This document shows positions 7,195 through 42,853 of a stretch of DNA of 64,000 nucleotides, in pieces. The notes under the pieces were generated by a model. The model was not told where the DNA came from, did no database searches, and saw nothing but the letters and a program-made list of their open reading frames with translations. The first letter of the stretch is position 1; each line of letters opens with the position of its first letter. The stretch is taken from IMG/VR virus record IMGVR_UViG_3300036770_006893, positions 62,001 through 126,000 of that record; one strand, 5' to 3'. The position numbers and the translations under genes were made by a program.

Positions 7195-7995
7195 ATGAAA
7201 AATTTCTTTTTTATTAGCGGACTTCCACGTTCCGGCAGCACACTGCTTTGCAATATATTGGCCCAAAATGATAACCTATTTGTTAGTAAAGCAACTAGCG
7301 GATGTCATGATATTTTATTTAACGTCAGGAATCAATGGGATAAATTAATCGAGCATCAAGCAGAGGGCGTTAATTACAATCAGCTAAAGCGAGTGCTACA
7401 ACACATACTAAATAGCTATCATTCTACAGAAAAAAATAATATTGTAGATAAGGGAAGAGGATGGTTAAGCCTTATAGAAATGACTGAATTTATTCTGGGA
7501 TATGTTCCAAAAATTATTGTCCCAGTGCGAAACGTTAACGAAATACTAGCAAGTTTTGAAAAATTGTGGAGAAATAGCACTGGTCAAAGTCAATGGCTCT
7601 TTGAGCAAAACGACTATTTCAAAGCTCAAACAATGGAGGGGCGTTGTGATATATGGGCTAATAATTCTCAGCCAGTTGGCTTGGCTTTTAATCGTGTAAA
7701 AGATGCCATAGATCGCGGATTCAAAGATAGGCTATTATTTGTAGAGTTTGACGAGTTAACATCTCAACCCTTTCAAACTATGAAAAAGGTGTATAATTAT
7801 TTAGAACTACCATATTTTGAGCATAATTTTAACAATGTTGAACAATACACAAAAGAAGACGACGAAGGAATACATAGGATCCCAAATTTACATAGTATTC
7901 GTCCTAAAGTAGCTCCCGTACCACATGTTAGCAAACAAATCTTGGGAGAATTTTTAACACAAAAGTATAGTAACCTAGAACTATGGAGAAATTAA
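7195..7995 (+). CDS. Sulfotransferase family protein (P-loop, PAPS-dependent)
   Basis: 5'-phosphosulfate-binding loop FISGLPRSGSTLL, a DK motif, 3'-PB-like VRNVNEILASFEKL, and FVEFDELTSQP...KKVYNYLEL typical of Sulfotransfer_3-type proteins. Confidence 0.85.
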   Translation: MKNFFFISGLPRSGSTLLCNILAQNDNLFVSKATSGCHDILFNVRNQWDKLIEHQAEGVNYNQLKRVLQHILNSYHSTEKNNIVDKGRGWLSLIEMTEFILGYVPKIIVPVRNVNEILASFEKLWRNSTGQSQWLFEQNDYFKAQTMEGRCDIWANNSQPVGLAFNRVKDAIDRGFKDRLLFVEFDELTSQPFQTMKKVYNYLELPYFEHNFNNVEQYTKEDDEGIHRIPNLHSIRPKVAPVPHVSKQILGEFLTQKYSNLELWRN

Positions 7996-17161: not shown

Positions 17162-20100
17162 ATGGCATTTAATCTTACGGCAGAAATTAATTTACGCGGA
17201 CCCAGCAACATTAGGAACGTTGTTTCTAATATTAGAAGACAGTTAAATTCTATATCTGTTGACGTATCTCCTTCGGTTAGGAACTCAGATATAAGGTCTA
17301 TAGCAACAACTATTAGATCTAGACTAGCTGGTATTAGCATACCAGTGAATATTGCTGCAAGTAGTTCTTCTATAAGGGCTGTGTCTAGAAATATAAGGAC
17401 TGGAATAGGTAACGTAAACATTCCGGTGTCTGTCAATGTTAGCCAAAGAAGCTTATCGGCTGCCAGAAGGGATATCAATGCCCGACTTAATAACATCAGA
17501 GCAAATGTCAATGTCGTTGTTAATCCCGTTTCAGTTAGAAGTGCTGCTGCTCTTAATGCCAATCTTACCAATCTTAATCAAACATTGACTAATGTCACCG
17601 CGTCAGCGACTTCAGCAGCTACGGCAATCAGAGATTTATCTGCTGCTATGAGAGCAGCTGGCGGAGGAGCAAATGCTTTAACCCAAATTAATACTGCTTT
17701 AAATGTTACTACCAATAATGCATCATCAGCAAATGCAAGCATTAGAAATATGTCCGGAGAAATAGAAAATTTCGGAAGACAAGCGGGATTAGCAATTAGA
17801 AGATTTGCCGCGTTCACTACTGTTACATCTGTTTTTTATGGCTTGGCTAGATCTGTACAGTCTGGACTATCGGCATTTATAGAATTTGATAGGCAGCTAG
17901 TTAGAATATCTCAGGTTACTGGGGATAGCTTAAGTAGTATAAAAAATCTTTCTAATAGTATAACCTCTTTATCTCAACTATACGGAGTATCTTCTGAAAA
18001 ACTAGCTGAAGTAGCTGTTGTGTTGGCTCAAGCTGGGTTATCTGCTAAAGAAACTCAACAGTCTCTTGCGTCTTTAGCAAAGACTACACTGGCTCCATCG
18101 TTTGATAATATTAACGATACTGTGGAAGGTAGTATCGCACTAATGAGACAGTTTGGAATACAAAGTAATCAGCTAGAGCAAGCATTGGGTTCTGTTAACG
18201 CGGTAGCAGCAAAATTTGCTGTGGAAGCTGGTGATATTATTGCAGCTATTCAGAGAACTGGTGGTGTTTTTGCAGCTGCTAGCAAAGGCGTAAGCGAAGG
18301 AACCGATGCTCTTAATGAATTTATTTCTGTGTTTACCAGCGTACGAGCCACTACTCGTGAAAGCGCAGAAACAATCGCCACAGGTTTAAGAACTATTTTT
18401 ACAAGAATACAAAGAGGCGGGACTATAGAAGCCCTAAAAGATTTTGGTATTAGCCTAACGGACGTCGAGGGGAAGTTTGTTGGCGCCTACAAGGCTGTAG
18501 AGCTATTGAGTACTGGGCTATCCAAATTAGACCCAAGAGATTTAAGATTTAGTCAAATCGTAGAAGAGCTCGGCGGCTTTCGACAAATTGGTAAGGTTAT
18601 TCCACTTATTCAACAGTTTGCTACGGCACAAGACGCTCTTCGAGTAGCACAAACTGGTGCTGGTTCTTTATCGGAGGATGCGGCAAAGGGTCAATTAGCA
18701 CTCGCTGTGCAGATAGCAAGAGTAAGAGAAGAATTTTTAGCTCTTATTAGAAGCGTTGGCGATACGTCTAGCTTTAGAACTTTGGTTAAATTAGGGCTAG
18801 ACCTGGCCAGCTCTCTAGTCCAGGTAGCAGATGCTGCAAAAGAATTGATCCCGCTTATAGGAGCATTTGCGGCTTTTCGTGGGGCTCAATCATTAACTAG
18901 GTTTGCTGCTGGCTTTGCTGGCGGAATCAGAGGTACTCCAGCAAGAGGTTTTGCTAGTGGTGGTTATGTTCCTGGGTCTGGCAATAGAGATACTGTTCCT
19001 GCTATGCTTACCCCAGGAGAATTCGTCATTCGCAAAAAGGCTGTTGAAAAAATTGGCGTCAGCAGTTTATCTAGATTAAATCGTAATAATGGCGGCCCAG
19101 TGCCCGCTCAATATTTTGAAGATGGCGGACAAGTACAACGGTTTGGCATAGGAGGAGTTGCCAAGAAAGGTGTAAACTGGAAAAATCTGTCTAAAGGCAG
19201 GGGTAAAAAAGGGCCTCGCGGACCACGAGCCAGATTTGATTTACCGCAACCAGGAGATGCAGACTTTGCTAAATGGCAACGTGAAGTATACGCAGAGTAT
19301 GATGCCGATCCTTCCTTGCCAAGAGTAAGAGTAAATGGTATACCAATGCCACCTGAAATCGCCTATGTCAATGAATTGATAGGAGAGGAGATTTTTAGGC
19401 AAAATTTTAGAAGCCGTAAAAGCAAAAAATCTGGCAAGCTTAAAAAAACACCGCTAGGATTAATAATAAGTGCCGCAAAAATGCCCAGAGGTCCACGAGC
19501 ACCAGCTGGTGAGATGGAAAAAATTATGGCTGGATATCAGCAATCTCCTGAGTTTCAGAAAGAAGCCGTCGGGGCAGGATCTTCCTTATTTTCAACCCTA
19601 AAAGGACCATTAGCATCTTTTAAGAAAGGAGGTACTTTTGGTGGTGTGATAGCTCCAGGCTCAGAAAATGCCACAAAGATAAAGGGCGCTTTAGCGAAAC
19701 TACTGAGTCAGTCATCTGGACAAGATGCTACTAAAGCTAAAACAGCACTAGATAAATTCGATTCATTTATAGCTGGTTCAACACCAGAAAAACCTGGACA
19801 CGTCTCCCATTTTACCTGGGCTATGAATCAGATATTCAAGAAAGGAATAGCAACGTTTGGTAGAGGAGGAAGAGCCTCAAGAAGAATGGGGGTTTTTGAT
19901 TTTGATATGACAACTGGAATAACGAAACAAAAAGAAACACCAAGCCTGTCTGGTTTTAGAGATCCAAAATTAGCAGTGCCAGATATACTAGGAGCAACTC
20001 CAACTGGCCTGGTTGGCCTTATGCGTAGATATGGTGCTTCACAAATTCTTACAGCACGATCCGGTGGACCAAGAGGGGAGATGAGAAGAGCTCTCGGCAC

Positions 20101-23100
20101 CTTTTTTAGACGAAGCGGAGTGATGTTACCGCAATCTAACATAATAACCCTCGGCGACCAAGTAGGATCTCTTAGTACAGCAGAGAAAAAAGCTAGGGCG
20201 CTCTATGCTATAGTTAAAAAATATGGAAAAGTTGATTTTTTTGATGACGACACAGCTAATATAGATGCTGCAAAAATGGTTAGGGGAGTAAGCGCCAGAA
20301 AAGTATCAGTAATGAAAAATTTGGGTGGCTTTGTTCAGAAGTTCATGGCTGGCAAAGCCGTAAAAAGAATGCCCGATTTGCCGCCTGATATTAAGGCGCT
20401 AATAACTAGAGAAGCGCGTCTAGGCATAGGCAAAGAAGACCCAGCACTACAATCCGCCTTATTAAATTTGGTAGCTAAGAGAAATAGATCTGTAGGAACA
20501 ACAGAATTAGCTAGTAGACTTGCGGGCTTAATCAAATCAAATCAATTAACTCCACGACTGGCTAATCAAATGCTGTCTACAGGAGGATTAGCAATACCTA
20601 CAGGACCAGGAGGTAAAACAACCATACAAGCATTATCTTTGGAGGCTCTAGGACCAAAAGACACAACCAAATACACAAGAAATATAGGAGGAAGAGAAAC
20701 AGATATTCTTAGAGCTTCTCCAACACCTGATTTATCAGCACGGCTGACTAGAGATTTAGTGCAAGGCACCAGAATAGGCATTGCTAGATTCATACGAACC
20801 GGATTAACAGAATATGCTATGCAGAGTCCAGAAAATAGACGGAGCCTAATTGATAGGGGAATTAAATTTGATAGCAAAGGCAGGGCAATACCCCCTAGGT
20901 CTGCTGTTGATGCTGCTATGTCGCATGGAGATGCTGGTAATTTTTTGGGCCCATTATTCGAAAAGGGAATCATTGGATTGGGAGCACAAGCTGGACCAAG
21001 CCTTCCTGGAAAAGCAGCACCGATAGACACATCAAGAGTCGGAGATATAGTAGCAAGCATTATGAGAGGAGGGGCGCCGATATCCGCTGAACTCCCAACA
21101 GAACTTAGGGCAGCCAAAGCTAAAACACGAGCATCAGCAGGTATTCCTAATATTAATAAAAGAGGATTAGTCAATCAAATATTGAGATTTTTTAAATTAC
21201 CAGGACTAAAGTTTGCGCAAGGAGGACTCGTTCCTGGTGTGTCTTCTTCACGAGCTAGAGAAGCTATATTAGGAAAACAGCTTAGTGGAGTTGAAATGAT
21301 CAGAGCCGCTAGGCGCGCTGGTTATGATATAGAAGAATTAGACAACGGATTGATTAGGTTATCTCGTAATAATAAGACTATGCACACACTGAGCCGACAG
21401 GAGGCGTCTAAGCTTCTGGGTAGTATGACTACTGGTTATAATCTCGGTGGAATGATACAAAAATTTGCTAGGGGGGGGTCTCCAAAAGATACTGTACCAG
21501 CACTGCTAACCCCTGGTGAGTTTGTAATTAATAAGAAGGCTGCTGCCAGACTAGGATCTAGTAAATTACATCGATTAAATAAAGCTGATAAAATTAGTGG
21601 CTTTAACACCGGAGGAGAAGTTGGTCGTGTGCCAACATTTTCTTCTGGTGGTGATGTTCAGAGATTCTTTTTTGGAGGAAGAGCAAGTGCTAGACCAGGA
21701 ACCGAGGCAAATACATCAAATCTTATGATAGCAGGAAATGTGACGACCCAACTTAGAGAGGTCGCTACTGCTTTACAAGAATTAGGCGCGGCTTCGTCTG
21801 CTTCCGCTGATATTTTAAGAAGAGGAGGTAGAATAAGCGTAGAGTCAGCAAATGCTGCTTATGAAGCTGATATACTAAGAATGAGAGTTGCCGGAGCGCC
21901 AATGGATGCTGTAATTCAGGCAGAAACACGTTTGGCAAATATGAGAAGACAAGCTCAGACTCAAGTAGCTGCACAAAGACAATTAGCCGGCGTTGGCGGA
22001 GCGCAACTAGAGAGAGTAGACACAACGGCCCAACAAAATATACAAAGAATGATACAAAGAGCCCAAAACTCTGGGGTTGATCTCAACGAAGCTCAAAGAG
22101 CTAGAATCGAAGATTTAGGATATCGTAGAGCGGCTCAAGCAGGAGGATTATCAGCAGCTCAAACTGCAGGTTTAAGTGGTAATGATATTAGGCAGTTTAT
22201 TAATAGCGCTATGGGAGATCCTAGAACATTCGAACAAATGAACAGACAGTTTGAGGCTAGAAGACGAGCTGAGTTAAACAATCAATATATTGCTGAAAAT
22301 AGATTTGGTGGTGATCGGAGACGTATACTGCAACAAGCGAGTAGAGATGCTGCTGAAGAAGCCAGAATACGAAGACAAACACTAAATCAAACACGAGGAG
22401 CAGCAGGCCCAGGAGGTACTCGTGGACAGCGAATGCAACAAGGTATGTTTGCGGCTAGTTTTGCACTACCCATGCTAGCACAAATGCTTGCTGGAGATCC
22501 TTCCAGAGCAACTAGTGCTGGTGGAGCCGCAATGTCTGCTGGTATTCAGGGTGGTGCTAATGCTTTAGCTTTGGGTACAATGTTATCAAGCCTCGTCCCC
22601 CCAGGACTGCCTCAAGTTTTTGTCGGCGTTGCAACAGCTGCCGGGGCTGTGGCTCAGGGATTTATAGATGCGCGTAATGCGACTATAGAATTTGAAAAAA
22701 ATATGTCAGCTAAAAAAGTGGAATTTGCGATAGCCGACACGGTAAGGCTTTTTGATAAACTGTCTAAAGATATTAAAAATATAGATGTTCAAAACGCTAT
22801 AGGTGATAAGCTAGTAGAAGCCGCCAAAGCCGCAGAAAGATCAATAGAAATTCAATCCAATACAGCCAGAGCATTTTGGATAAATATGATAGATGCTTTT
22901 GCTTCAAACGGTAGAGAAGCAGCACAAAGGGCCCAAATTTTAGAAAAATATGGAACCACAGCTTATTTATCAACAACTACTATAGGCCAATCTTTTATGG
23001 GAGGTTCTGGAACAGCGCAACAAAGAGCTGAACGCCGCAGGTCTAACTTTGCTATGGAAATGGCTCCAGAGCAAGCTAGAGAAATTTCTAGACAATTTTC

Positions 23101-26100
23101 TGAAATAGCAGATAGTTCAAACAAGCTTTTAGAAGAAAAAATTCGTAGTGGATTAAATATTGAGCAGTATATAAATACAGATGAATTTAAGGGTCTTAGC
23201 CAAGCAATAGCACTATCAAATGCCGCTATTGCTGAACAAATTCTCAATATTAGAGCCAGTACTGTTTTGACCCAGGCTCAAAAAACAGCACAAGAAAAAC
23301 TTATTATATCAACATATGCTGAACAAGAAGCGCGTAAAAGAGCAGCTGCAATAACGAGAGAGCTTGAAATAAAACAGGCCCAAAAAGTTGTGAATCAATT
23401 GGCTCGGTCTTTGGATCGTATGTTTGGTAATATGGAACAGGCTATAAATAAGACAAATTTTGCACTAGAAAAAATGAGTCGAGATTTGGATCTGGTTTCA
23501 TCCTCTCTAACCGGACAGGCTAAATTAGGTGAAAGATCAATACAGGCGATTAATGTATTGCAAAACCCTAGAGCCTATGGCTCCGGAGAATTGAATATGG
23601 CTCGCGGTCAAGCTGCTGGATTTTTTGGAGATAGTGGAAATATCATTCGTGGACTATTGACTCTTGGAGATGATATTGAAGCTAATATAATGGGCACTAT
23701 TAATAGGACATTAAGAGATACTAGAGATGATTCTCCTGGTAAAATAGCTATAGCTATACAAAAATCCGTTAAGGAAAAATTAGCAGGGCTAGCTTTACCA
23801 AAAGATCTATCGGATAAATTAGCTCGTGAAGTATCCAAGGCTCTAGAAGAAATACGTAAAGATGGTGAAGACCAAGCGGATTTTACACAGCTGGAAGAAA
23901 AACTACAAGATTTAAACAAAATTATTGATAGTACAACGAAAGCTCAAGACATAGCTATTAAAGCGTTAGAAACATGGCAAAATGCTCTAAATTCATATTC
24001 TTCTTCTATGAATTCTTTGGTCGATCTACAAATAGACTATCAGTCCAGACTAAGAACCAGTAATGATATTCTTTTGGATGGTCAGGCATCATTAGCTAGA
24101 TCTCTCGGTAAAGATATTGGACTGGAGTCTATAGCTAATCGACGCAATTTAAGAATTGCTCAACAAACTGGAGGAGCTACGGCCCCACAGGATATTTTTC
24201 GCAACATAAATAGACTAGAATTATTGAGGGCGCAACAAGAAAACGCTTCGAATGTAGCTGCTCAAAGAGGCCCATCTGGAGCTAAAGATTTTGTAGAAAT
24301 GCAAAATAACCTTAGGTCTACTAATGTTGCACTAAGAGAAAATTTTGATGCGCTAAAAAATCTTGCTGAAAATTCCGATTTAGCATCAGCCGCTCTTAAT
24401 AAGATACAAGAAGCACAACAAAGACAACAGGGAAAAGTTTCTTTTATCGAAAAGCTTGTGACCTCAACACCAGAAGAATTAAGTGGACTCAATCGAGCTT
24501 TCGTAAGACTGCAAAACAATATTAATGGTCAGGTTAATACTATCAATAATAGTGTTGGTGCCCAACGAGCCTATATTGAAGCCATCAGAAGTGGATCCAA
24601 TGCTTTTGAAGCTATGAAGGCTGCGCAAGATGCTTTTGCGAACGAAAGAAGAGAGACTCTGTCGGCTCTAAATGATATACTACCATTTTTAGGAGGAGGA
24701 AATAAAGCAAATCAAATAAGAGCCAATACTTTAGAATCAATGCTAGCTGAGTCTGGTGTTGGTGTCTCTCCTATGTTTCAAGATATATTAAACTCTCTTA
24801 GAGATCCAGAACTAGATCCAGAAACACAAAAAGCCATTGCTCTTTATGAACAGGCCAACATTCTTCAGGTTAAGGCCAACGATTTTCTTGCTCAAATTAA
24901 TCTAAAACTAGGTGAACAAACAGCAGAAGCAGCAGCCAAAGCTATAGCAACGGCTCTTTCTTCTGTGGTGCTAACATTCAAAAATGCTGAACAAGCAGAC
25001 ATAAATAGAGGACTTATTCCACAAAATAGAGCTAAAGGAGGAATAATTTATGCCTCCAAAGGAGTTTTTGCACCAAAAGGAACAGATACTGTTCCAGCGA
25101 TGTTAACTCCTGGAGAATTTGTCGTTAATAAAAATGCTACAGCAAAAAATTTACCTCTATTAAAAAGCATTAATAGCCAGACTCTTAGTTCTGGAGGTAA
25201 AGTAAAGTATTATGCTCGTGGAGGCTTAGTAAGTAGTTACTTAAGTACCAACGCTCAGTCTAGGGACGATTTTCAGCAAACAAAAGACAAATTTCTAGAT
25301 CTTTCTGAAAATGAACAACTATTTCAGGATGTGTCAAAGACATCACTATTTAGATTACCAAGCACATATATCAGAAAACCACAAGCTGGATTACAAACAC
25401 CCAGTAAATCATCTCCCGCAAGAGAAAGATACGATGATCGGCCAAATAAATATCGCTTAAAAGAATTATATTCTAATTCTGGAGAAATACTACCAGGATA
25501 CGTAACTAGTAAAATAGATTTAGGCCCCTATTATTATAGTGTTCCGTCTATGGCTACGGTCGCTAACAGAGAACTAGGCAAGTATTTAGAGCCTGTTAAT
25601 TTGATTCCTGCTGGTATTAAAACCACAATTTTAGGACTAGACTCCACAGATTTAGACATATCGTCTAAAAAATATAGCAAAAAAGATTTTGCTGAATATA
25701 AGAAAAAATTAGAGACGTTAAATATAGAAAGATTTAATTGGATTAACAACCCAGCAAGCTTTGCGCTCAGAGCATTAGAGGGTGTTACACAAGAATATCC
25801 TTCAAATATAGATCCAACCGCTTTAAACAATAGATTTTTTGATCCTAATTCTAAGCAAAAGCTAAGCTCTATCTATCCATCAGATGCAGGTCTCAGAACT
25901 TCTTCTGTTCCTTTTAAATATGCTAAAATTTTATCTGACAACCGATCTGATTATTTCGGTATTACTACTGGTTCAATAGGAACAGAGCCTCCAAATGGAG
26001 ATTTTTCATCTGGCCCCACTTTATCTAAAACAATAGATACAATGTGGGCTAAGGTATGGAATATAGATAAAAATAAAGCTTTGTCTCCACAGAGAGCCAA

Positions 26101-29100
26101 AGATATACTTAACTATAATCGCAAACAATTTAAGCTTATAAATAAAACTGTTCAAGCAGCTAAAGATAATTTTAAAGATATAGAGCTAGAAGATTCTGGC
26201 GAATTAAAAGACTATTTTGAGCTACAGCAGCAGTTGGGTAATCTATATAATAATTTTTCTATATACGAGGACTTTAATAAGCTGGATTTATTTGCAAATC
26301 CGCTATTATCTAATGCTAAATCACTAACAGTATTGTCTAATACTTCTGTTGCTAGATCAGATCTAAAAAAATATATCGAAAACCAACAAGCCCAGCTCGC
26401 TCAAGGAGTCGCCCCAGACAATAACGATAATCCAATCCTTATTGGTCTTAGAGATCCGCTTCCGCCAGATCTACAAGACGCAACCAACAAGTGGGTTAAA
26501 AAAACTGAATTTGATATTTTTTCTAGAGATGGGACCGGCCCAGTCAAAACTTTCCCATTCTTAATTAATGCAGATGCCAGAGATTTAGGCGAGGGTTTTA
26601 TGAAGAGAGCCGCTGTTGCTCTACAGGCCCAAAAAGATGCTATAGAAACAAGCATGGTAATAGATAATAATAAAATGACGCTTACGCTTGGCGCCGGTAA
26701 GAACATAGAGCTCCCCTATTCTGCAACATACACAAAATATAGTGGTCCTTTGTGGGATTTAAACAATAATACTTTTAGTGATGATAAAAATAAACAGCTC
26801 AAAGATTTATTCCTTCCAGATAAGGGTGCTGAAAATTCTATTTTTTCTAGTTTAGATACTAATGGAAGTAGATTATTTAAAAGGGGTGGTGTTTTTGATC
26901 TAAATAATATTCAACAAAGTATACCAGCTGACAATATCAATAAATTAATAGATTTGGTAAAAAATAATTCTGAACAAAATTTAATAGATAAAGAAATACA
27001 AAATATAAAAAATCAATCATCATTAACATTTAGACATATTGGAGATAATCAGGGATCACTAATTAAACTACAAAGAGCTATTGGTAAAGAAGTTTTTGTA
27101 GGCTATTCTCAATTAGCAAACACACCTGTTGATTTTGGAGCGTTTGTTGCTCAAGGTGTTATAGACTATGCTAAAAATTTAAAACAAGAAGCTGGAATAG
27201 CAGCTGGTCGTGCTCAGGGAGCAGATGATCAAGACCGAGTAGTATCAGATGTTCCGATGGCATTGCAACAACTAACAAAAGGAGCATTGAATGTATTTGG
27301 TAGAAGGCCTATTCCAGGTATAGGTCGTGGATGGCTAGCAAATAACATAAGACCGCTTATTGGATTAATGTCTAGACAGGGTCGCGGCAGAGCACCCGGT
27401 CTTACTAACGATCAAGCTAGAGGAGCATCTGCGTATATTAGAGATGTGATGAATAATGTTGGTGGATATGTTAATCAAATATCCGGAAGAGTATCCAATC
27501 CTGTGCTATACAATAGCTTAAAGGATACTTTAATTCTTATACAAGGTGCCTATAAATCATTTGATGCGCTGGCCAGATCAGATAGTGCAGATTTAGCACA
27601 AATGCTGAAATCTAATCTGGATCCAGAATCTATATTCCGTAGTTTTGGTTCTGGTGCTATGCTTGATAGAATAGCCATGAGCGAACTATCTGGCGACTAT
27701 AAGAATATTCTTGGTCAGCAGCTACGTGGGTCAAAGATAGCAACGGTTGGTGATAATGGCGATATTAAGCTACAAGAAGCGGCCAATCTTGAATTTAGAA
27801 ACTATAAAGACTTAATCAAATTGGCCATCAACCCGTATAATGAGTTTTCTTCTGTAAAAACTAGAAGAGGTATTTTTGGTAAGCTTACGAACGATATTTC
27901 TGGTGCTGTTGATAATAGGGGTATGCCTTATTTTGATCCTAACACACTCAATTTCTTATTAACTTCGCTCAATCAGCTAGATAAATGGTATGGTGGTGTT
28001 GGTCCTTGGCTAGGTCAAGACTATCTCTTTGATAAGACCTTAGACCCGGATCCTGCTACACGATCTCAAAAATTCCTGGCTAGTTTGCAGAAGGCCCAAG
28101 GAATATATGAATTATCTAATGTTGCCTATCAAAATCTTGGTGGGGCTGGTAAGTTTGGTCCAGTTTTACCAAATAAAGAATGGTTTCAAAATCGTATAGA
28201 TGCTGGCAACTTTGCTACCGGCGGTATGGTTTATGCGTCCGGTGGAACACTAGTTAACTATCAGCCACGAGGCACAGATACTGTTCCTGCTATGTTAACT
28301 CCGGGAGAGTTCGTGGTCAACAGATCTGCTACAAGAAAAAACCTGCCACTATTACAGCAAATTAATAGCGGTTACTTAGCAGAAGGCGGTATGGCCGAAA
28401 GTGCTGGTGTTAGTAGATTAAGATGGACTCCAGAAGGACGAACACGAGCTATAGAACAAAAGGACACAATCACCCCAAAACTAAACAATATAAATAAAAA
28501 CGTTCTCAATAATTTTACTAGTATTACATCTATTCAAAAAGATATTAAAAATATTAAAGATAGCATAAATAACAATACGCAATCTTTACAACAAACTATA
28601 AGCCTACTAAATATTAAATTTACTGAATTACAAAACCTATCTCAAGCCTTGGCTCCGTTTGTTTATAGTCAGTTACTGGTGGCTTTAAGAAATTTCTGGA
28701 GTAGTTTAGGAACAGCCATTATAACACAGGGACTCGGTAATGGTGCGCCATGGCCTCCTGCTCCGTTTAGCGATGGAGGAATTGTATATGCTAGCAAAGG
28801 ACAGCTCATTAATTTTCAACCAAAGGGAACCGATACTGTCCCGGCAATGCTTACTCCGGGCGAGTTTGTTGTTAATGCTAAAGCAACTAAAAATAATTTG
28901 GGATTATTACAAAGTATAAATAATGGAGTTGGTGGGTATAATAGGGGTGGAGTGGTTTATTTGGAAGATGGCGGCTTAACTCCTGGAGCAAAACAATCAT
29001 TAATAGACTTACAAAATCAAGGATATAATTTACAAGATATTGTATCTGGTAAAACAAGAATTCCTGGTATTATAGTAGAGACATCTAAAAAACAATATGA

Positions 29101-32100
29101 TCCTATGATGCCAACAAAACCGGCCCCAAACATAGAAACATATAGAGAAAATCCAAAATTATGGAACGGATTTAAAGACTCTAGTGGTTTTTGGTGGAAT
29201 AAAAGAGGAGAATCTGTCATAAGCGCATATGGGACTCCCCCAGTATTGCCAAATTTTCAAGAAAGAATGCAAGCATTTGAGTCTATTGTAAGTGCTTTTG
29301 CCGGGGCGGGCGGAGTAGGAGGTGGTCGCGGAAAACTAGCAGATGTTCGTGGCCTGCCTGCTGGAATGCCAATGCAGAGAAACGCTCCCGGACCATTAGG
29401 AACTAAAGTCGCTATTCCATATCTTATTGGTAGACCAAATCCCAATAATGCACCAAGAGCTAATTCAATGGGTCTCACATTAGACGCGATTAGAGATCCG
29501 CTAACAGGAAACTACTACGTATCAGATACTCCCGCAAGAAATATTACTATTTCTGGACGCCAAGGATTACCAGCGCCAAAAACTAGACAAAGAACAAAAT
29601 CACCTCTAGATTTAGAAAATGGTAAAATACCAGATTCTATTACTAATCCCAAATCCAAAGAATTTATGCATCTTGCGATAAAAGAAATGATTGGATATAC
29701 TGAATTCATGAATCTGGTTAAGCTAAAAGTACAAAGATCAGATAGGACATACTCTAGCTTATTAAAATTTTTAGCCTTAGATATATTTCCAAAAGGAAAT
29801 GCTTATGGAGTTGATTCTCTAGATAAAGCTATTTCATTTTTTAATACTCCAGAAGGTATAGAATTATATAATACAAAAATATCTCCAAAAATAGGCGTTG
29901 TTCCAGAGATAGGTGGATATAACGCATCTATAATTAATCAAAATTCTAAAACAGGTGGCGGAGGCATTACAGGAAGACTATTAAAAGAATTATTTCAACA
30001 AAATATATTTCATATTAGTAAAAGATCAGCAAATGTTCCAGACGATCTTAATTCCAGAATGGCGTCGTTGATTCCCCCAACAGCTGGATTGCTATATGAT
30101 GACAATATAGCAAAACTATTATCTTCCGCTGGCGTTACGCCAAAAGTAGATTCGAATAGAGTTAGTTATGTATTTGATGTCGCTGAAGCAGGGAAAGACT
30201 GGGGGTTACTTACTCCAGATCAAAGGGCCCATCTACAACAATTTGCTCCAAAAGCAACTGGCAGCGAATCATCTAATATGAAAAGAGGTCAGCTTAGGAC
30301 ATCATCCAGAGAAAGATTAGGTGATGGGCCGCCTAGCTTATCGAAATTTGGAACAGCCACTCCTAAAAAATCTTTTCACGGATCAGGATCAGAAATTATT
30401 CAAGTAGACCCAATGAAGCTGAACCAGGGTATGCTTGGTGAGGGTTTTTATGTGGGTTTTGATGCTAACGAAGCACCTATTAATTTTTTAAAGATGAGAT
30501 TAGACAGCTGGTTACTAGCTAACAAGCTAAAACCAGGAAATATTACACCAGAGCAATTAGCGCAATTTAAGGGTGGTATATATCCAGTTGATATATTAGG
30601 AGGCATTGATGACTTTTTGGCTGCTGATCAAATTCTAAAAGACAATCCGGCAGCGTTAGCAAAAATAGAAAATATATACAAAGACTTAGGACTAAGAAAA
30701 GTTTCTCTTGGACCAATAGAATATAAAAATGATCCAACGACAGGAAGAGCAAAAGCAGTAAGAACAGAAGGACCGCTTGATCTACCATCTGCCACAGTTA
30801 TGCAGGTTTACGACAATATTCAAAACCAGCTAGCAGCTAAATATGAAACTGAATTTGCTGGTAAATCCAATATTCCTGATCCAAGATTTGAGGCGCTCAC
30901 AAGATCAGCTACAGATATGAGAAATATATTTGTAAAATATGGCATACCCGGATTTACCGATTTAAATAATGCTCGTAGTCAAGGCTCGATGGCAGCTATA
31001 TTTGATTTGAATAGAATTAAATTAGGTAAGGCATATATTCCTGATAAAATACTCAAAGAAATAATGATGCCCATTGATCAAAATACTTATAAAGATATTG
31101 ATGGCGACTTAGAAATATTAGAATCTGTAAATAAAAAGAAAGGAGGTATAATTTATGCTAGCAAAGGCCAGTTTATAAACTTCCAACCTCGTGGCACCGA
31201 TACTGTTCCCGCAATGTTAACGCCTGGAGAATTCGTAGTTAACCGAACGGCCACACAGAAAAACCTACCTCTGTTAAAAGCTATTAATAGCGGTGTTGAC
31301 GGATATAGCAATGGAGGAGTTGTTTATTTAGCTGCTGGTGGCAGGCCACAGCGTACAACTCGAGATAAAAATAAGCTTGATATTAGAGAAATAGATAATA
31401 GATTCAGGTCGCAAATGACCAGTCGCAATGCTCAACAAATGGCCGAGGCCGCCGCAAACAGAGAAGGCAAGCTATGGGTATTCATGGTTAAGACTAGAGA
31501 TAATAATGGCGCAGAAACAACGGGCTTTTTAACAAAGGATCCTAATAACCCCAATCAGCCGGCACCAAAAAATATTCCGCCACAAACAGAATCTTTACTT
31601 GCGAATAGACTAGATGAAATATTTACTCTAAGAGCAAGAAATGAAAAAGAGGCCATGGATGCCTACAAAGAGATGAATGTAGCCGGACTGTTACCTGAAG
31701 TCAAACCAGCCTCAGCTCAACAAGCACTGAACAAGGCTAGAAAAAAATGGATGCAGCAACCACTATATGCCAAGATTTTTGATGAACTAGCTTATCAAAT
31801 TAATTTAGATCGAAATCAATTTAGCATATTTAATCCTGATTTCTTCAATCGAAATGTTAATGTTGATGAAAATATAAAGCCAATTATGGCTATTGTTGAT
31901 AATATGGATCCCAACAACCCCGCATCTGTTGCTTTGGGCGTTCCAGCAATATTAACTAAATTAAGACCAATAGTTCAAAGAATTAATTATTTGCGACACA
32001 TTATTAGAAACAATGAGCAGGCCCTAACAGCAGTTAAGAGTGCGATAGCCTCAGGCCTAAATATAAACGATCCTGCTAATATGAGAAAAGCTTTCGAAGG

Positions 32101-32965
32101 CAATCCTGCTACAAAAATTAATGAGGAACAACTTAATGGCGCCAAGCCCGAATTGGCTGGTGGTGAACAAGTATTAAATAAGCTTGGAACTAATCCTGTA
32201 CTAGCTAATCTTGGACGAGATCCTAGGTTTAAAGAGATAGTATCCACGTTTGGTTATGGTCCAGGAGTGGCTGTATCCACATTTGAGCGCCGTGTAGAGC
32301 AGATGGCTGCTCCACCAAAACTACTAGCCTCTGGTGGTAGAGTTACCTATGCTAGTAACGGACAGCTTATTAATTTCCAGCCACGGGGTACCGATACTGT
32401 ACCAGCTATGTTAACACCAGGAGAATTTGTGGTTAATCGCGAAGCGGCCAATAAGCACTTGTCTCTATTGCAAGCTATTAATAACAATAATTTTGCAAAT
32501 GATTCTGTTTTAACTTTAAGTCGAGGTGGTTTTATTTCCCCAGCATATTTACGTAATGGTGGATCAGCACCCTCTTTGGCCGGTTTATCTGATATGGTAT
32601 CAAAACTTACTCAGAGCATACAATCAGCAGTAGAAACAGCTATAACCAAAGCTTTTGAAAATTCTGAGCTATTGCGATCTAATTCTAGCGATGGTGTATC
32701 TGATAATGGTGCTGTTGTTGATCAAATAGCGGCGTTTACTAGAAATTTGGGAGATTTGGCGAATCGACTAGAGACGATATCTGTACCACCAGAAATCACT
32801 ATACAAGGACGACAAGACATCAATGTTAACGCTAATGGATTACAGGTACTTTCCAGTCTAGACCCATCTATGAAACAGCTCGCTATGAATATGATCAAAA
32901 CCGCATTTGATAATTTGGCCACAAAAAATCCCGGAACTTTAGATTTTAATGTAGACTATCCATAG
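17162..32965 (+). CDS. Giant tape measure protein (5267 aa), TP901 family, with embedded HAD and ADP-ribosyltransferase-like domains
   Basis: PhageMin_Tail/TP901 core near 17870-18700 (LAQAGLSAKET...LMRQFG...AVAAKFAVEAGDIIAAIQRTG...AETIATGLRTIFTRI); long Ala/Arg/Gln helical tracts; hydrophobic stretch near 22440-22670; follows tube and chaperones. Confidence 0.92.
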   Translation: MAFNLTAEINLRGPSNIRNVVSNIRRQLNSISVDVSPSVRNSDIRSIATTIRSRLAGISIPVNIAASSSSIRAVSRNIRTGIGNVNIPVSVNVSQRSLSAARRDINARLNNIRANVNVVVNPVSVRSAAALNANLTNLNQTLTNVTASATSAATAIRDLSAAMRAAGGGANALTQINTALNVTTNNASSANASIRNMSGEIENFGRQAGLAIRRFAAFTTVTSVFYGLARSVQSGLSAFIEFDRQLVRISQVTGDSLSSIKNLSNSITSLSQLYGVSSEKLAEVAVVLAQAGLSAKETQQSLASLAKTTLAPSFDNINDTVEGSIALMRQFGIQSNQLEQALGSVNAVAAKFAVEAGDIIAAIQRTGGVFAAASKGVSEGTDALNEFISVFTSVRATTRESAETIATGLRTIFTRIQRGGTIEALKDFGISLTDVEGKFVGAYKAVELLSTGLSKLDPRDLRFSQIVEELGGFRQIGKVIPLIQQFATAQDALRVAQTGAGSLSEDAAKGQLALAVQIARVREEFLALIRSVGDTSSFRTLVKLGLDLASSLVQVADAAKELIPLIGAFAAFRGAQSLTRFAAGFAGGIRGTPARGFASGGYVPGSGNRDTVPAMLTPGEFVIRKKAVEKIGVSSLSRLNRNNGGPVPAQYFEDGGQVQRFGIGGVAKKGVNWKNLSKGRGKKGPRGPRARFDLPQPGDADFAKWQREVYAEYDADPSLPRVRVNGIPMPPEIAYVNELIGEEIFRQNFRSRKSKKSGKLKKTPLGLIISAAKMPRGPRAPAGEMEKIMAGYQQSPEFQKEAVGAGSSLFSTLKGPLASFKKGGTFGGVIAPGSENATKIKGALAKLLSQSSGQDATKAKTALDKFDSFIAGSTPEKPGHVSHFTWAMNQIFKKGIATFGRGGRASRRMGVFDFDMTTGITKQKETPSLSGFRDPKLAVPDILGATPTGLVGLMRRYGASQILTARSGGPRGEMRRALGTFFRRSGVMLPQSNIITLGDQVGSLSTAEKKARALYAIVKKYGKVDFFDDDTANIDAAKMVRGVSARKVSVMKNLGGFVQKFMAGKAVKRMPDLPPDIKALITREARLGIGKEDPALQSALLNLVAKRNRSVGTTELASRLAGLIKSNQLTPRLANQMLSTGGLAIPTGPGGKTTIQALSLEALGPKDTTKYTRNIGGRETDILRASPTPDLSARLTRDLVQGTRIGIARFIRTGLTEYAMQSPENRRSLIDRGIKFDSKGRAIPPRSAVDAAMSHGDAGNFLGPLFEKGIIGLGAQAGPSLPGKAAPIDTSRVGDIVASIMRGGAPISAELPTELRAAKAKTRASAGIPNINKRGLVNQILRFFKLPGLKFAQGGLVPGVSSSRAREAILGKQLSGVEMIRAARRAGYDIEELDNGLIRLSRNNKTMHTLSRQEASKLLGSMTTGYNLGGMIQKFARGGSPKDTVPALLTPGEFVINKKAAARLGSSKLHRLNKADKISGFNTGGEVGRVPTFSSGGDVQRFFFGGRASARPGTEANTSNLMIAGNVTTQLREVATALQELGAASSASADILRRGGRISVESANAAYEADILRMRVAGAPMDAVIQAETRLANMRRQAQTQVAAQRQLAGVGGAQLERVDTTAQQNIQRMIQRAQNSGVDLNEAQRARIEDLGYRRAAQAGGLSAAQTAGLSGNDIRQFINSAMGDPRTFEQMNRQFEARRRAELNNQYIAENRFGGDRRRILQQASRDAAEEARIRRQTLNQTRGAAGPGGTRGQRMQQGMFAASFALPMLAQMLAGDPSRATSAGGAAMSAGIQGGANALALGTMLSSLVPPGLPQVFVGVATAAGAVAQGFIDARNATIEFEKNMSAKKVEFAIADTVRLFDKLSKDIKNIDVQNAIGDKLVEAAKAAERSIEIQSNTARAFWINMIDAFASNGREAAQRAQILEKYGTTAYLSTTTIGQSFMGGSGTAQQRAERRRSNFAMEMAPEQAREISRQFSEIADSSNKLLEEKIRSGLNIEQYINTDEFKGLSQAIALSNAAIAEQILNIRASTVLTQAQKTAQEKLIISTYAEQEARKRAAAITRELEIKQAQKVVNQLARSLDRMFGNMEQAINKTNFALEKMSRDLDLVSSSLTGQAKLGERSIQAINVLQNPRAYGSGELNMARGQAAGFFGDSGNIIRGLLTLGDDIEANIMGTINRTLRDTRDDSPGKIAIAIQKSVKEKLAGLALPKDLSDKLAREVSKALEEIRKDGEDQADFTQLEEKLQDLNKIIDSTTKAQDIAIKALETWQNALNSYSSSMNSLVDLQIDYQSRLRTSNDILLDGQASLARSLGKDIGLESIANRRNLRIAQQTGGATAPQDIFRNINRLELLRAQQENASNVAAQRGPSGAKDFVEMQNNLRSTNVALRENFDALKNLAENSDLASAALNKIQEAQQRQQGKVSFIEKLVTSTPEELSGLNRAFVRLQNNINGQVNTINNSVGAQRAYIEAIRSGSNAFEAMKAAQDAFANERRETLSALNDILPFLGGGNKANQIRANTLESMLAESGVGVSPMFQDILNSLRDPELDPETQKAIALYEQANILQVKANDFLAQINLKLGEQTAEAAAKAIATALSSVVLTFKNAEQADINRGLIPQNRAKGGIIYASKGVFAPKGTDTVPAMLTPGEFVVNKNATAKNLPLLKSINSQTLSSGGKVKYYARGGLVSSYLSTNAQSRDDFQQTKDKFLDLSENEQLFQDVSKTSLFRLPSTYIRKPQAGLQTPSKSSPARERYDDRPNKYRLKELYSNSGEILPGYVTSKIDLGPYYYSVPSMATVANRELGKYLEPVNLIPAGIKTTILGLDSTDLDISSKKYSKKDFAEYKKKLETLNIERFNWINNPASFALRALEGVTQEYPSNIDPTALNNRFFDPNSKQKLSSIYPSDAGLRTSSVPFKYAKILSDNRSDYFGITTGSIGTEPPNGDFSSGPTLSKTIDTMWAKVWNIDKNKALSPQRAKDILNYNRKQFKLINKTVQAAKDNFKDIELEDSGELKDYFELQQQLGNLYNNFSIYEDFNKLDLFANPLLSNAKSLTVLSNTSVARSDLKKYIENQQAQLAQGVAPDNNDNPILIGLRDPLPPDLQDATNKWVKKTEFDIFSRDGTGPVKTFPFLINADARDLGEGFMKRAAVALQAQKDAIETSMVIDNNKMTLTLGAGKNIELPYSATYTKYSGPLWDLNNNTFSDDKNKQLKDLFLPDKGAENSIFSSLDTNGSRLFKRGGVFDLNNIQQSIPADNINKLIDLVKNNSEQNLIDKEIQNIKNQSSLTFRHIGDNQGSLIKLQRAIGKEVFVGYSQLANTPVDFGAFVAQGVIDYAKNLKQEAGIAAGRAQGADDQDRVVSDVPMALQQLTKGALNVFGRRPIPGIGRGWLANNIRPLIGLMSRQGRGRAPGLTNDQARGASAYIRDVMNNVGGYVNQISGRVSNPVLYNSLKDTLILIQGAYKSFDALARSDSADLAQMLKSNLDPESIFRSFGSGAMLDRIAMSELSGDYKNILGQQLRGSKIATVGDNGDIKLQEAANLEFRNYKDLIKLAINPYNEFSSVKTRRGIFGKLTNDISGAVDNRGMPYFDPNTLNFLLTSLNQLDKWYGGVGPWLGQDYLFDKTLDPDPATRSQKFLASLQKAQGIYELSNVAYQNLGGAGKFGPVLPNKEWFQNRIDAGNFATGGMVYASGGTLVNYQPRGTDTVPAMLTPGEFVVNRSATRKNLPLLQQINSGYLAEGGMAESAGVSRLRWTPEGRTRAIEQKDTITPKLNNINKNVLNNFTSITSIQKDIKNIKDSINNNTQSLQQTISLLNIKFTELQNLSQALAPFVYSQLLVALRNFWSSLGTAIITQGLGNGAPWPPAPFSDGGIVYASKGQLINFQPKGTDTVPAMLTPGEFVVNAKATKNNLGLLQSINNGVGGYNRGGVVYLEDGGLTPGAKQSLIDLQNQGYNLQDIVSGKTRIPGIIVETSKKQYDPMMPTKPAPNIETYRENPKLWNGFKDSSGFWWNKRGESVISAYGTPPVLPNFQERMQAFESIVSAFAGAGGVGGGRGKLADVRGLPAGMPMQRNAPGPLGTKVAIPYLIGRPNPNNAPRANSMGLTLDAIRDPLTGNYYVSDTPARNITISGRQGLPAPKTRQRTKSPLDLENGKIPDSITNPKSKEFMHLAIKEMIGYTEFMNLVKLKVQRSDRTYSSLLKFLALDIFPKGNAYGVDSLDKAISFFNTPEGIELYNTKISPKIGVVPEIGGYNASIINQNSKTGGGGITGRLLKELFQQNIFHISKRSANVPDDLNSRMASLIPPTAGLLYDDNIAKLLSSAGVTPKVDSNRVSYVFDVAEAGKDWGLLTPDQRAHLQQFAPKATGSESSNMKRGQLRTSSRERLGDGPPSLSKFGTATPKKSFHGSGSEIIQVDPMKLNQGMLGEGFYVGFDANEAPINFLKMRLDSWLLANKLKPGNITPEQLAQFKGGIYPVDILGGIDDFLAADQILKDNPAALAKIENIYKDLGLRKVSLGPIEYKNDPTTGRAKAVRTEGPLDLPSATVMQVYDNIQNQLAAKYETEFAGKSNIPDPRFEALTRSATDMRNIFVKYGIPGFTDLNNARSQGSMAAIFDLNRIKLGKAYIPDKILKEIMMPIDQNTYKDIDGDLEILESVNKKKGGIIYASKGQFINFQPRGTDTVPAMLTPGEFVVNRTATQKNLPLLKAINSGVDGYSNGGVVYLAAGGRPQRTTRDKNKLDIREIDNRFRSQMTSRNAQQMAEAAANREGKLWVFMVKTRDNNGAETTGFLTKDPNNPNQPAPKNIPPQTESLLANRLDEIFTLRARNEKEAMDAYKEMNVAGLLPEVKPASAQQALNKARKKWMQQPLYAKIFDELAYQINLDRNQFSIFNPDFFNRNVNVDENIKPIMAIVDNMDPNNPASVALGVPAILTKLRPIVQRINYLRHIIRNNEQALTAVKSAIASGLNINDPANMRKAFEGNPATKINEEQLNGAKPELAGGEQVLNKLGTNPVLANLGRDPRFKEIVSTFGYGPGVAVSTFERRVEQMAAPPKLLASGGRVTYASNGQLINFQPRGTDTVPAMLTPGEFVVNREAANKHLSLLQAINNNNFANDSVLTLSRGGFISPAYLRNGGSAPSLAGLSDMVSKLTQSIQSAVETAITKAFENSELLRSNSSDGVSDNGAVVDQIAAFTRNLGDLANRLETISVPPEITIQGRQDINVNANGLQVLSSLDPSMKQLAMNMIKTAFDNLATKNPGTLDFNVDYP
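18989..32431 (+). repeat. Seven dispersed copies of the peptide motif DTVPA(M/L)LTPGEFV inside the TMP
   Basis: Asp codons begin at 18989, 21488, 25085, 28277, 28832, 31199 and 32393 (aa 610, 1443, 2642, 3706, 3891, 4680, 5078). Each copy is flanked by (F/Y)xxGG half-motifs. Confidence 0.95.
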
Positions 32966-42160: not shown

Positions 42161-42853
42161 ATGAGAATAATTTTTTCAAATTTTGCCGATAGAATTGTTA
42201 AATTGTGCTGCTCCAAATCTAATAATCCAGACCTTCCTCCAGAATGTCTGGAAGATGTTTTTCCCTCGCCTAGTCCCTCCCCAACTCCATCTGTGACGCC
42301 ATCAATCACTCTATCTATTACGCCGTCCATGACACTATCCGTCACGCCTTCTATGACGCCTACGCCATCACCTACCCCAAATGTTGTGTTGCCACCAACG
42401 TCCTATGTTTGCGATCCTTCTGATAATTTTTGCTTTTCTGCACTAGAGCCACTTAACTGTGGCTGTGTATTTAATGCTCCTGAGGTCTATGTTTCTGGAG
42501 AACAGTCCGGTTCGATATGGCGAAGAGTTTCAGTTTCATATAATGGCCCAGATGGTCAGTGCGACAATAATGGTGACTGCTCTATGATCGTCATCCGTGG
42601 TTCTGTGTCAATTAGATATCCTGGTTCTCCGCTATCAAATTGGATCATAGGCGAAAAGGTAGATATGGTATTAGGATACGCTCCCAGCTTTATAAATACG
42701 TTTGGATATATATGTGGCACAACACTAATATCTTCAAACGAGGGTGTATACGAAGGCATAGTCCTTAGGTGTACGCCACCCGCCCAACCTCCTGATCAGC
42801 CAGATCCTCCAGACACATCTAATTTAAGCGTAGTATTTATGAGGGCATTATGA
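42161..42853 (+). CDS. Hypothetical protein with Ser/Pro/Thr (TPS) low-complexity linker
   Basis: SPSPSPTPSVTPSITLSITPSMTLSVTPSMTPTPSPTP tract; Cys-rich flanks. Confidence 0.6.
   Translation: MRIIFSNFADRIVKLCCSKSNNPDLPPECLEDVFPSPSPSPTPSVTPSITLSITPSMTLSVTPSMTPTPSPTPNVVLPPTSYVCDPSDNFCFSALEPLNCGCVFNAPEVYVSGEQSGSIWRRVSVSYNGPDGQCDNNGDCSMIVIRGSVSIRYPGSPLSNWIIGEKVDMVLGYAPSFINTFGYICGTTLISSNEGVYEGIVLRCTPPAQPPDQPDPPDTSNLSVVFMRAL

Follow-up and report, generated by a model that had tools for sequence, protein, structure and literature searches.

Phage tape measure proteins (TMPs) are regarded as rulers that bear, at most, cell-wall-cutting motifs, and the C-terminal end of pb2, the TMP of T5, is muralytic and fusogenic. 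TMPs fill the lumen of the tail and are ejected when infection begins, forming or lining the conduit for DNA (PMC7824862; Cumby et al., as cited in PMC12619734), and PMC12619734 also cites a peptidoglycan-hydrolase motif in the TMP of mycobacteriophage TM4. The RNA-repair HAD phosphatases of jumbo phages, namely the PKN-HAD and the SAK (Swiss-Army-Knife) HAD, are found as stand-alone proteins or fused to kinases and accompany RNA ligases (Iyer et al. 2021, PMC7824862). Here, a predicted HAD phosphatase cassette is described inside a giant TMP that is encoded in a 64,000-nucleotide stretch, referred to below as the window (G+C content 37%), from positions 62,001 to 126,000 of the virus record IMGVR_UViG_3300036770_006893, a contig of approximately 224 kb. 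All of the evidence is computational and comes from metagenomes.

The list of open reading frames (ORFs) of the window and their translations contained a stop-free ORF of 5,267 amino acids (aa) on the plus strand (Table 1). Residues are numbered here from the ATG at position 17162. The public gene call is 5,179 aa long and starts 88 codons later, at position 17426, so that database residue numbers are offset by 88. Pfam PF10145 (PhageMin_Tail) matched aa 265-470 with an E-value of 1.5e-22, TIGR01760 (tape_meas_TP901) matched with an E-value of 3.8e-21, and several PHROG TMP families matched as well. The ORF is a TP901-type tail tape measure protein. It belongs to a block of large structural genes, most of which are unannotated; neighbouring genes match tail-fibre and minor-tail families, and the order of the tail genes around it is common to related viral contigs (synteny with loci L003 and L004). 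Across the HAD region, zero differences were seen in Logan contigs that came from three runs of a single subsurface-metagenome study; in run X1 a single contig spanned positions 18000-22000 without differences, and in run X2 a second contig covered positions 18586-22000. Since these contigs agree without any difference, the in-frame fusion of the HAD region to the TMP is not an assembly accident.

Positions 19886-20305 of the plus strand translate to aa 909-1048 of the TMP, which are exactly the 140 residues in which an earlier note, made from the sequence alone, had recognised four HAD motifs. Translation verified the position of each motif, and their order is the one that had been claimed. 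In a 32-sequence alignment of HAD homologues (A1), residues T964, R966, K1010, D1028 and D1029 were invariant (A1 columns T70, R72, K116, D134 and D135, respectively), and D913 and D915 of motif I as well as N1033 (A1 N139) were kept in at least 90% of the rows. In a four-sequence alignment (A2), which was used for the search of related loci, the residues K, E, T, P, S, L, S, F and P of the flap insert were invariant, and the consensus of the wider family at this place was DFSxFxDP. The HAD domain is complete and apparently active. On the opposite strand, a 104-aa ORF (19828-20142, minus strand) lies across the HAD region and also "matches" related loci; it was rejected as a gene and is a by-product of the conservation of the sense frame.

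A phmmer search with a 171-aa stretch against 1.84 billion representatives returned 41 matches with E≤1e-3, led by 2e-55, 2e-47 and 4e-31, far more than chance would produce. Megablast and tblastn searches with the HAD region against 50,697 phage records returned zero matches. When the 32 homologues were scanned singly, only families of the HAD clan were matched in numbers: DUF2608 (PF11019) by 16 of them (best E-value 3.6e-9), Hydrolase by 13, and Acid_phosphat_B, NIF and PNK3P (PF08645, best E-value 8.8e-4) by seven each. The lone Pfam line for the window domain itself was a sub-threshold match to Chlorophyllase, which was dismissed as noise. The A1 profile retrieved only HAD proteins from PDB, all of them below threshold (E-values of 0.07 to 0.8), and the neighbours of the domain in the ESM atlas were phage HADs, in clusters of the T5 dNMPase (PF26880), HAD_SAK_1, DUF2608 and Acid_phosphat_B.

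The AlphaFold2 (AF2) model built from A1, with a predicted local distance difference test (pLDDT) score of 86.4 and a predicted template modelling (pTM) score of 0.82, contained a five-stranded Rossmannoid core of alternating strands and helices, with a short flap and two small helices where a cap would be. Foldseek searches of PDB with this model returned HAD phosphatases nearly exclusively. The best E-values were obtained for MDP-1 (1u7p), phosphoserine phosphatase and AphA, and the best TM-scores for the 3'-phosphatase of T4 Pnkp (5uj0_A; 0.57/0.66, root mean square deviation 3.9). In BFVD there were 36 matches at E≤1e-3; 16 of the top 50 were named Pnk or PNKP, and a pandoravirus SAK HAD had the highest query TM-score (0.68). 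In hhalign, A1 aligned to aa 156-289 of T4 PseT, which is its phosphatase half, with a probability of 64% and an E-value of 6.5e-5; motifs I to IV were in register, T964 and R966 fell on S211-G-R213, and K1010 fell on K258. Taken together, the motifs, the family evidence and the predicted fold bear out the claim that a complete HAD domain (aa 896-1058) is embedded in the TMP, and the proposed small-cap layout like that of the T4 Pnkp 3'-phosphatase agrees with the PDB match of best TM-score and with the PseT alignment.

The module was found to recur. A local hmmsearch with the A1 profile was run on 131 long proteins (>1,500 aa), made up of the 120 closest giant TMPs, which are not a random sample, and others. 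The HAD module was present in 39 of the 120 and in 50 of the 131 overall, and 12 giant TMPs with the module were found by a word-indexed search limited to very long proteins. The 50 TMPs were assembled independently (ENA, JGI and Logan sources); the fusion is in frame in all of them, and each of the 50 embedded copies preserves DxDxT, (T/S)-A-R, the lysine and DD. A search with aa 200-600 of the TMP matched at least 748 clusters of proteins of approximately 3,000-7,900 aa at E≤1e-20, on contigs of up to approximately 250 kb, and none of these clusters had a cultured relative.

Compared to an 82%-identical relative (L002), the amino acid identity was 85% for the HAD domain and 67% for the whole TMP. 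The numbers of nonsynonymous (dN) and synonymous (dS) substitutions in the domain were 0.105 and 1.40, respectively, a dN/dS of approximately 0.07 that is only approximate because dS is near saturation. The HAD module is under purifying selection. The TMP stretches most conserved between the window and L002 were positions 19202-19846 (aa 681-895, 87%) and 29006-30301 (aa 3950-4380, 91%), and for neither of them was a family or function identified; the dS of aa 3950-4380 was unusually low (0.48), which suggests a recent exchange. The TMP of another locus (L004) was 56% identical in the N-core and 35% identical in the helical body. Within aa 641-1412 only aa 896-1058 aligned to it, with 68% identity, and the counterpart lies at aa 1601-1762, approximately 700 residues further along. 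The start of the module ranges from aa 480 to aa 2950 among the TMPs; its median relative position is 0.23, and its flanks are unrelated. It behaves as a shuffled, mobile cassette.

In a maximum likelihood tree (quick search; support by the Shimodaira-Hasegawa-like approximate likelihood ratio test, SH-aLRT), the embedded copies fell into a clade found only in embedded form (clade A, 34 TMPs), the clade of the window (clade B, 13 TMPs) and three other modules. Clade B was sister to 143-aa stand-alone phage proteins with an SH-aLRT support of 97, and well-supported branches require that the module changed between the embedded and the free state at least twice. The embedded clades share less than 30% identity and yet keep all four motifs. 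The free forms, which are 42-51% identical, lie in runs of small genes on the same strand, with a GDP-mannose dehydratase, a glycosyltransferase and a sigma factor among their neighbours. The earlier note had described (F/Y)xxGG half-motifs on both sides of the domain. The upstream one, FGRGG, held up, and the downstream one did not: NLGGFVQKF is not itself (F/Y)xxGG and equals the first half of the linker YNLGGMIQKFARGG at aa 1426-1440. The motif is not a mark of the whole family either, since the upstream form was found in 14 of the 50 modules (background in a 35-residue window, 0.12), all of them among the 16 outside clade A (clade B plus the three others), and the 34 clade A modules are without it. 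Other embedded HAD copies terminate in GGIIQRFAGG-type strings.

Two further features of the family were observed. Distant stand-alone homologues (P0008, P0011-P0014 and P0017) had C-terminal ankyrin repeats and a DUF2608 match, an architecture typical of effectors of intracellular bacteria or of giant viruses; for two more of the stand-alone homologues (P0009 and P0030) the contigs are too short to show a gene context. In the 34 clade A TMPs the HAD module is always followed by a conserved extension of approximately 110 aa, "QG..FE...LGGP...IDFP.GL..AAKYF..NIPTDAKRTL.GP", in which D, K and T are invariant (alignment A4: P0118:1136-1265, P0160:1251-1385 and 23 others). A PD-(D/E)xK nuclease was considered for this extension from the pattern E...IDFP...(D/E)xK, and it was supported neither by a profile search of PDB nor by the ESM atlas.

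A second segment of the same TMP, aa 4383-4640, looks like an ADP-ribosyltransferase (ART) domain of the ART-PolyVal type, as suggested by weak profile matches, a motif and the predicted fold. The ART-PolyVal domain is defined by an active-site configuration of H in strand 1, Y in strand 2 and D in strand 5 (PMC5512222), and H, Y and D were invariant among nine homologous TMP segments (alignment A3). PF18760 was found on 50 of the 100 nearest clusters in the ESM atlas and was the sole Pfam family matched by the ART-like segments, weakly and in four of nine members (best E-value 0.0076). The AF2 model (pLDDT 75.6) matched segments of polyvalent proteins and a "PolyVal ADP-ribosyltransferase" in Foldseek, with E-values of 5e-9 to 2e-3. 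The ART-like module was found in eight giant TMPs, twice in one of them, and seven of the eight also carried the HAD module; the Fisher p value for this co-occurrence was 0.005 uncorrected and 0.06 after related sequences had been collapsed. In P0047 the ART-like module stands directly upstream of the HAD. Precomputed matches to PF03496 (ADP-ribosylating exotoxin), EF-hand, PF28597, PF16581 and PF03983 were present in the TMPs of some relatives. With the HAD and the ART-like module in one polypeptide, the TMP resembles a "polyvalent" injected protein, and such proteins are recognised by what is found here, at least two unrelated effector-type domains in a single polypeptide.

The modules of the TMP are punctuated by a repeat. 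As read from the sequence, seven copies of an element of approximately 70 aa, "GG..(Y/F)xxGG..G(T)DTVPAMLTPGEFV(V/I)N..LL..IN", divide the protein into modules (Table 1); their cores are identical over 33 nucleotides, and such internal repeats break some contigs. PHROG and ordinary TMP families carry the element once, at the C-terminal end, so that the giant TMP looks like a concatenation of TMP-end units. The most hydrophobic stretch of the protein, which is rich in Gly and Ala, is a candidate membrane-interacting or membrane-inserting segment.

Table 1. Features of the giant TMP and of its HAD cassette in the window.
Feature	Position	Strand	Basis or remark
Giant TMP ORF	17162-32965	+	5,267 aa, stop-free; ORF list and translation
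Conserved TMP N-core (PF10145 region)	17954-18571	+	Pfam match
Repeat copy 1 of 7 (GG..DTVPAMLTPGEFV..)	18914-19111	+	Delimits modules
HAD phosphatase cassette (predicted), aa 896-1058	19847-20335	+	Module limits from alignment to the L004 TMP; AF2 model; Foldseek
Upstream linker FGRGG ((F/Y)xxGG), aa 899-903	19856-19870	+	
HAD motif I VFDFDMT, aa 911-917; nucleophile D913, acid/base D915	19892-19912	+	
Flap/mini-cap insert KETPSLSGFRDP	19931-19966	+	Conserved within the close clade
HAD motif II ILTARS, aa 962-967; T964 and invariant R966	20045-20062	+	
HAD motif III AEKKA, aa 1007-1011; K1010	20180-20194	+	
HAD motif IV FFDDDTANI, aa 1026-1034; D1028, D1029, N1033	20237-20263	+	
Downstream linker NLGGFVQKF, aa 1053-1061	20318-20344	+	First half of a repeated GG linker
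Repeat copy 2, centred on aa 1443	21413-21610	+	Closes the segment holding the HAD cassette
Most hydrophobic TMP stretch, Gly/Ala-rich, aa 1761-1835	22442-22666	+	Kyte-Doolittle scan
Repeat copy centred on aa 2642	25010-25207	+	
Repeat copy centred on aa 3706	28202-28399	+	
Repeat copy centred on aa 3891	28757-28954	+	
ART-PolyVal-like module, aa 4383-4640; H4406, Y4430, D4615	30308-31081	+	
Repeat copy centred on aa 4680	31124-31321	+	
Repeat copy centred on aa 5078	32318-32515	+	

The best explanation of these findings as a whole, which we hold with moderate confidence, is that the HAD cassette is an active, TMP-borne phosphomonoesterase delivered at the start of infection. Residues 896-1058 would form a self-contained, catalytically intact, Mg2+-dependent HAD (DxDxT) phosphomonoesterase with a minimal cap, which would have been inserted with Gly-Gly linkers on both sides into the head-proximal fifth of the giant TMP. 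A few copies would thus be built into every virion and would leave through the tail immediately before the DNA; as part of the TMP, the enzyme would be delivered in these few copies before any phage gene is expressed. After exit the module may fold or refold and, at the very start of infection, dephosphorylate a substrate that is present in few copies and is probably polyanionic or macromolecular, and it is from the small number of enzyme copies and the minimal cap that a scarce or macromolecular substrate is argued. In related phages the same job may be done by the 143-aa stand-alone protein encoded among small, early-looking genes. We infer delivery into the host from the identity of the protein as a TMP only; the timing, the cellular compartment and the substrate are inferences as well.

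Several points weigh against this account. Direct searches of Pfam (even at E≤1), NCBIfam and PHROGs, as well as phmmer against PDB, did not recognise the domain as a HAD, and because direct searches with hidden Markov models (HMMs) miss it, a subfamily, and hence a substrate, is not transferable to it. The match to HAD_SAK or PNK3P profiles that the earlier note had proposed as a check was not obtained: the window domain had no Pfam match to PNK3P (PF08645) or HAD_PNKP (PF25109), and none to HAD_SAK_1 (PF10307), which was also absent among the families matched by the homologues and is linked to the domain only through atlas neighbours and a single BFVD match. The phage is uncultured, and among the INPHARED records the TMP N-core is matched best by an SPbeta-like TMP, with 25% identity. 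A folded domain of approximately 160 residues in several copies should not fit into the lumen of the tail tube; storage in an unfolded or extended form must probably be assumed, with folding after exit. The N-proximal part of a TMP may not reach the cytoplasm. By analogy with its family, the ART-like module would be expected to depend on NAD+, a cytoplasmic cofactor, which suggests that TMP cargo does arrive there. The HAD module and its free relatives are strongly basic (isoelectric point, pI, 9.6-10.8), a charge that suits nucleic acids or acidic lipids, and since the whole TMP is basic too (pI 9.7) the charge of the module says little about its substrate. Finally, no kinase or ligase partner turned up in family scans of the larger ORFs of the window and of the two flanks that were read; no search was aimed at such partners, and approximately 140 kb of the contig lie outside these scans.

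For the substrate of the delivered phosphatase, polynucleotide 3'-phosphate ends, as in Pnkp, are ranked first, a choice that we put forward tentatively. They are followed by nucleotides, by phosphates of envelope lipids or glycans, and by phosphoproteins, all of them serious competitors. Roles in end healing, as a signal phosphatase or against host defence, as the earlier note had proposed, would be plausible for the module; the classical form of end healing is disfavoured by the kinase and ligase partners that did not turn up in the scans.

A nucleotide phosphatase that acts on (deoxy)nucleoside monophosphates or another small nucleotide, in the manner of T5 Dmp or the class B enzyme AphA, and so alters pools or destroys a monoester signal, seems unlikely to us. 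The domain lies near the T5 dNMPase clusters in the ESM atlas, T5-like dNMPases are among the BFVD matches, AphA is among the best Foldseek matches in PDB, and Acid_phosphat_B was matched by seven of the 32 homologues. Direct kinship with T5 Dmp was rejected, with no PF26880 match and an hhalign probability of 15% that extended over the N-terminal half only. A handful of enzymes per virion would, moreover, be ill-suited to draining millimolar pools, and the minimal cap argues for large substrates, as such a cap goes with large substrates in C0 HADs.

An envelope phosphatase is comparably improbable. The enzyme would then act in the periplasm or at the membrane on phosphatidate, phosphatidylglycerophosphate, lipid A or lipopolysaccharide, or teichoic-acid-linked groups, and would ease the formation of the channel, in analogy to the muralytic motifs of other TMPs. 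Envelope remodelling is the only accepted precedent known for enzymatic motifs in TMPs (TM4 and T5 pb2). In 45 of 45 TMPs the HAD module lay on the N-terminal side of the first segment of strong hydrophobicity, one homologue had a weak match to APP1_cat (phosphatidate phosphatase), the periplasmic AphA is among the fold matches, and the basic charge would suit acidic lipids. Nevertheless, no lipid-phosphatase family matched significantly, and the nearest stand-alone relatives had no evident signal peptide or lipobox in the alignment. Their place among small early-type genes suggests a cytoplasmic role, which counts against an action on the envelope, as does the co-resident ART-like module, which would need cytoplasmic NAD+.

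A phosphoprotein phosphatase like MDP-1, FCP/SCP (NIF) or the DUF2608-type effectors of Legionella, which would reverse kinase-based defence or signalling of the host, appears rather more doubtful still. The best Foldseek E-value in PDB was that of MDP-1 (1u7p), which is annotated as a phosphotyrosine phosphatase; NIF and DUF2608 were matched by seven and 16 of the 32 homologues, respectively; ankyrin repeats, which bind proteins, are fused to several of the stand-alone homologues; and a response-regulator gene adjoins one homologue. All of these matches are weak and at the level of the superfamily, however, and the TM-scores to MDP-1 (0.43/0.45) are lower than those to T4 Pnkp (0.57/0.66). 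For the uncultured host no kinase-type defence context is known.

That the domain is non-catalytic, and serves as a spacer, plug or assembly element or is a decaying remnant, is very improbable. TMPs are primarily rulers, and their length and module content vary widely in this clade, so that insertions might be tolerated as passengers. Such a passenger would not be expected to keep its catalytic motifs in 50 of 50 copies across clades that are less than 30% identical, to show a dN/dS of approximately 0.07, to be more conserved than the average of the TMP, or to have free-standing orthologues. The chance that a separate HAD gene was fused to the TMP only by mis-assembly or a lost stop codon is negligible, for although this is a metagenome assembly and internal repeats of the TMP break some contigs, the X1 and X2 contigs span the region and the same fusion is present in the 50 independently assembled TMPs.

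The delivered phosphatase can be placed in a broader picture, which we offer as a possibility with a good deal of doubt. The giant TMPs of a large and entirely uncultured clade of phages of approximately 150-250 kb would be modular effector-injection polyproteins, or "polyvalent tape measures", and the HAD would be a pre-made counter-defence enzyme. The HAD was found in about a third of the TMPs scanned, often alongside the ADP-ribosyltransferase-like module. Cassettes between Gly-Gly/DTVPAMLTPGEFV linkers would be kept unfolded in the tail tube and would enter the cytoplasm of the host before the DNA does, and there the HAD could, for example, remove blocks of the 3'-phosphate type from nucleic acids or tRNA.

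Full-text literature searches returned no paper that describes a HAD or another phosphatase domain within a TMP, and none that describes a deliberate ART domain there. In PMC5512222, tape measures, phosphatases and polynucleotide kinases have 0 occurrences each, and the three occurrences of "had" are the ordinary verb. Enzymes embedded in TMPs and injected multi-domain proteins are already known; what would be new is the phosphatase (and ART) cargo in a TMP scaffold, in a large lineage without a cultured member. Its recurrence in dozens of related giant TMPs suggests that these tail proteins also carry enzymes into the host at infection. If this is true, the lumen of the tail doubles as a cargo hold for cytoplasm-type effectors. 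This raises the questions of how a globular enzyme is stored in a tube of approximately 4 nm and refolds after ejection, which part of the TMP reaches the cytoplasm, and which host process needs dephosphorylation before phage genes are expressed. The analysis has, in addition, brought to light a very large lineage of uncultured phages. Its TMPs measure approximately 3,000-7,900 residues, and their modules can be mined for new anti-defence activities.

The surroundings of the TMP gene contained several other recognisable genes. Just downstream (32975-38602) lies a gene for a 1,875-aa protein with an FGE-sulfatase-like domain, fibronectin type III repeats and a purple-acid-phosphatase N-terminal (Fn3-like) domain; its probable role is that of a tail tip or a receptor-binding protein. 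Within the tail block, an ORF of 478 aa (42850-44286) matched a PHROG "protease" family (E-value 9e-9), and it is pure speculation that this putative protease could process the TMP at Gly-Gly linkers. For the ORF at 7195-7995, the precomputed table of the identical JGI contig gives a sulfotransferase call (PF00685/PF13469). Genes for DNA polymerase III alpha, a single-stranded DNA-binding protein and a glycosyltransferase are found on one flank of the contig, and Mtd_N and Laminin_G proteins on the other; the left flank (L017) has two Mtd_N proteins together with Laminin_G_3 proteins, Mtd_N being the major tropism determinant fold typical of targets of diversity-generating retroelements. Assignment of a host failed, as the only genome match was a 5-kb contig in an Alphaproteobacteria metagenome-assembled genome and is not reliable evidence.

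Among known systems, T4 PseT (5uj0) shares with the cassette the HAD DxDxT fold with a minimal cap, and the arginine two residues after the threonine of motif II is aligned. The identity is approximately 15-17%. The T4 enzyme is fused to a kinase and is an early cytoplasmic protein, whereas the cassette is kinase-free and lies inside a virion tail protein. D254 of T4 PseT, which we take to be among its essential residues, is without an aligned counterpart in the HAD module. In the T4 record, PseT is annotated as acting against host defence together with RnlA. The RNA-repair HADs of jumbo phages are alike in that small HAD phosphatases are common in large phages, and HAD_SAK_1 clusters are among the atlas neighbours of the domain. 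In contrast to those enzymes, the cassette is part of a TMP; the stretches that were scanned yielded no ligase, and PF10307 was not matched. The small HADs of the DUF2608 (PF11019) and MDP-1 type resemble it in that DUF2608 is the commonest family among the homologues and MDP-1 has the best Foldseek E-value, but the domain of the window itself reaches no threshold and DUF2608 is without an established function. T5 Dmp is likewise a phage HAD that is present at the start of infection, the product of a pre-early first-step-transfer gene (T5 record), and a neighbour in the atlas; it is encoded on the first-step-transfer DNA and not carried by the virion.

With regard to delivery, TM4 and T5 pb2 also have a catalytic module within the tail-length ruler that is delivered by ejection. 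These known cases are cell-wall hydrolases that act on the envelope, whereas the window encodes a predicted phosphomonoesterase and an ART-like module, both of enzyme classes that are typical for effectors in the cytoplasm. In T4, Alt is an ART that is packaged and carried by the virion (T4 record), and in this respect it is similar to the ART-like module. The polyvalent proteins (Iyer et al. 2017, PMC5512222) combine several unrelated effector domains in a huge polypeptide that enters with the DNA, as the giant TMP would do; their scaffolds are head proteins of the MuF/DarB type, and here the scaffold is a tape measure protein.

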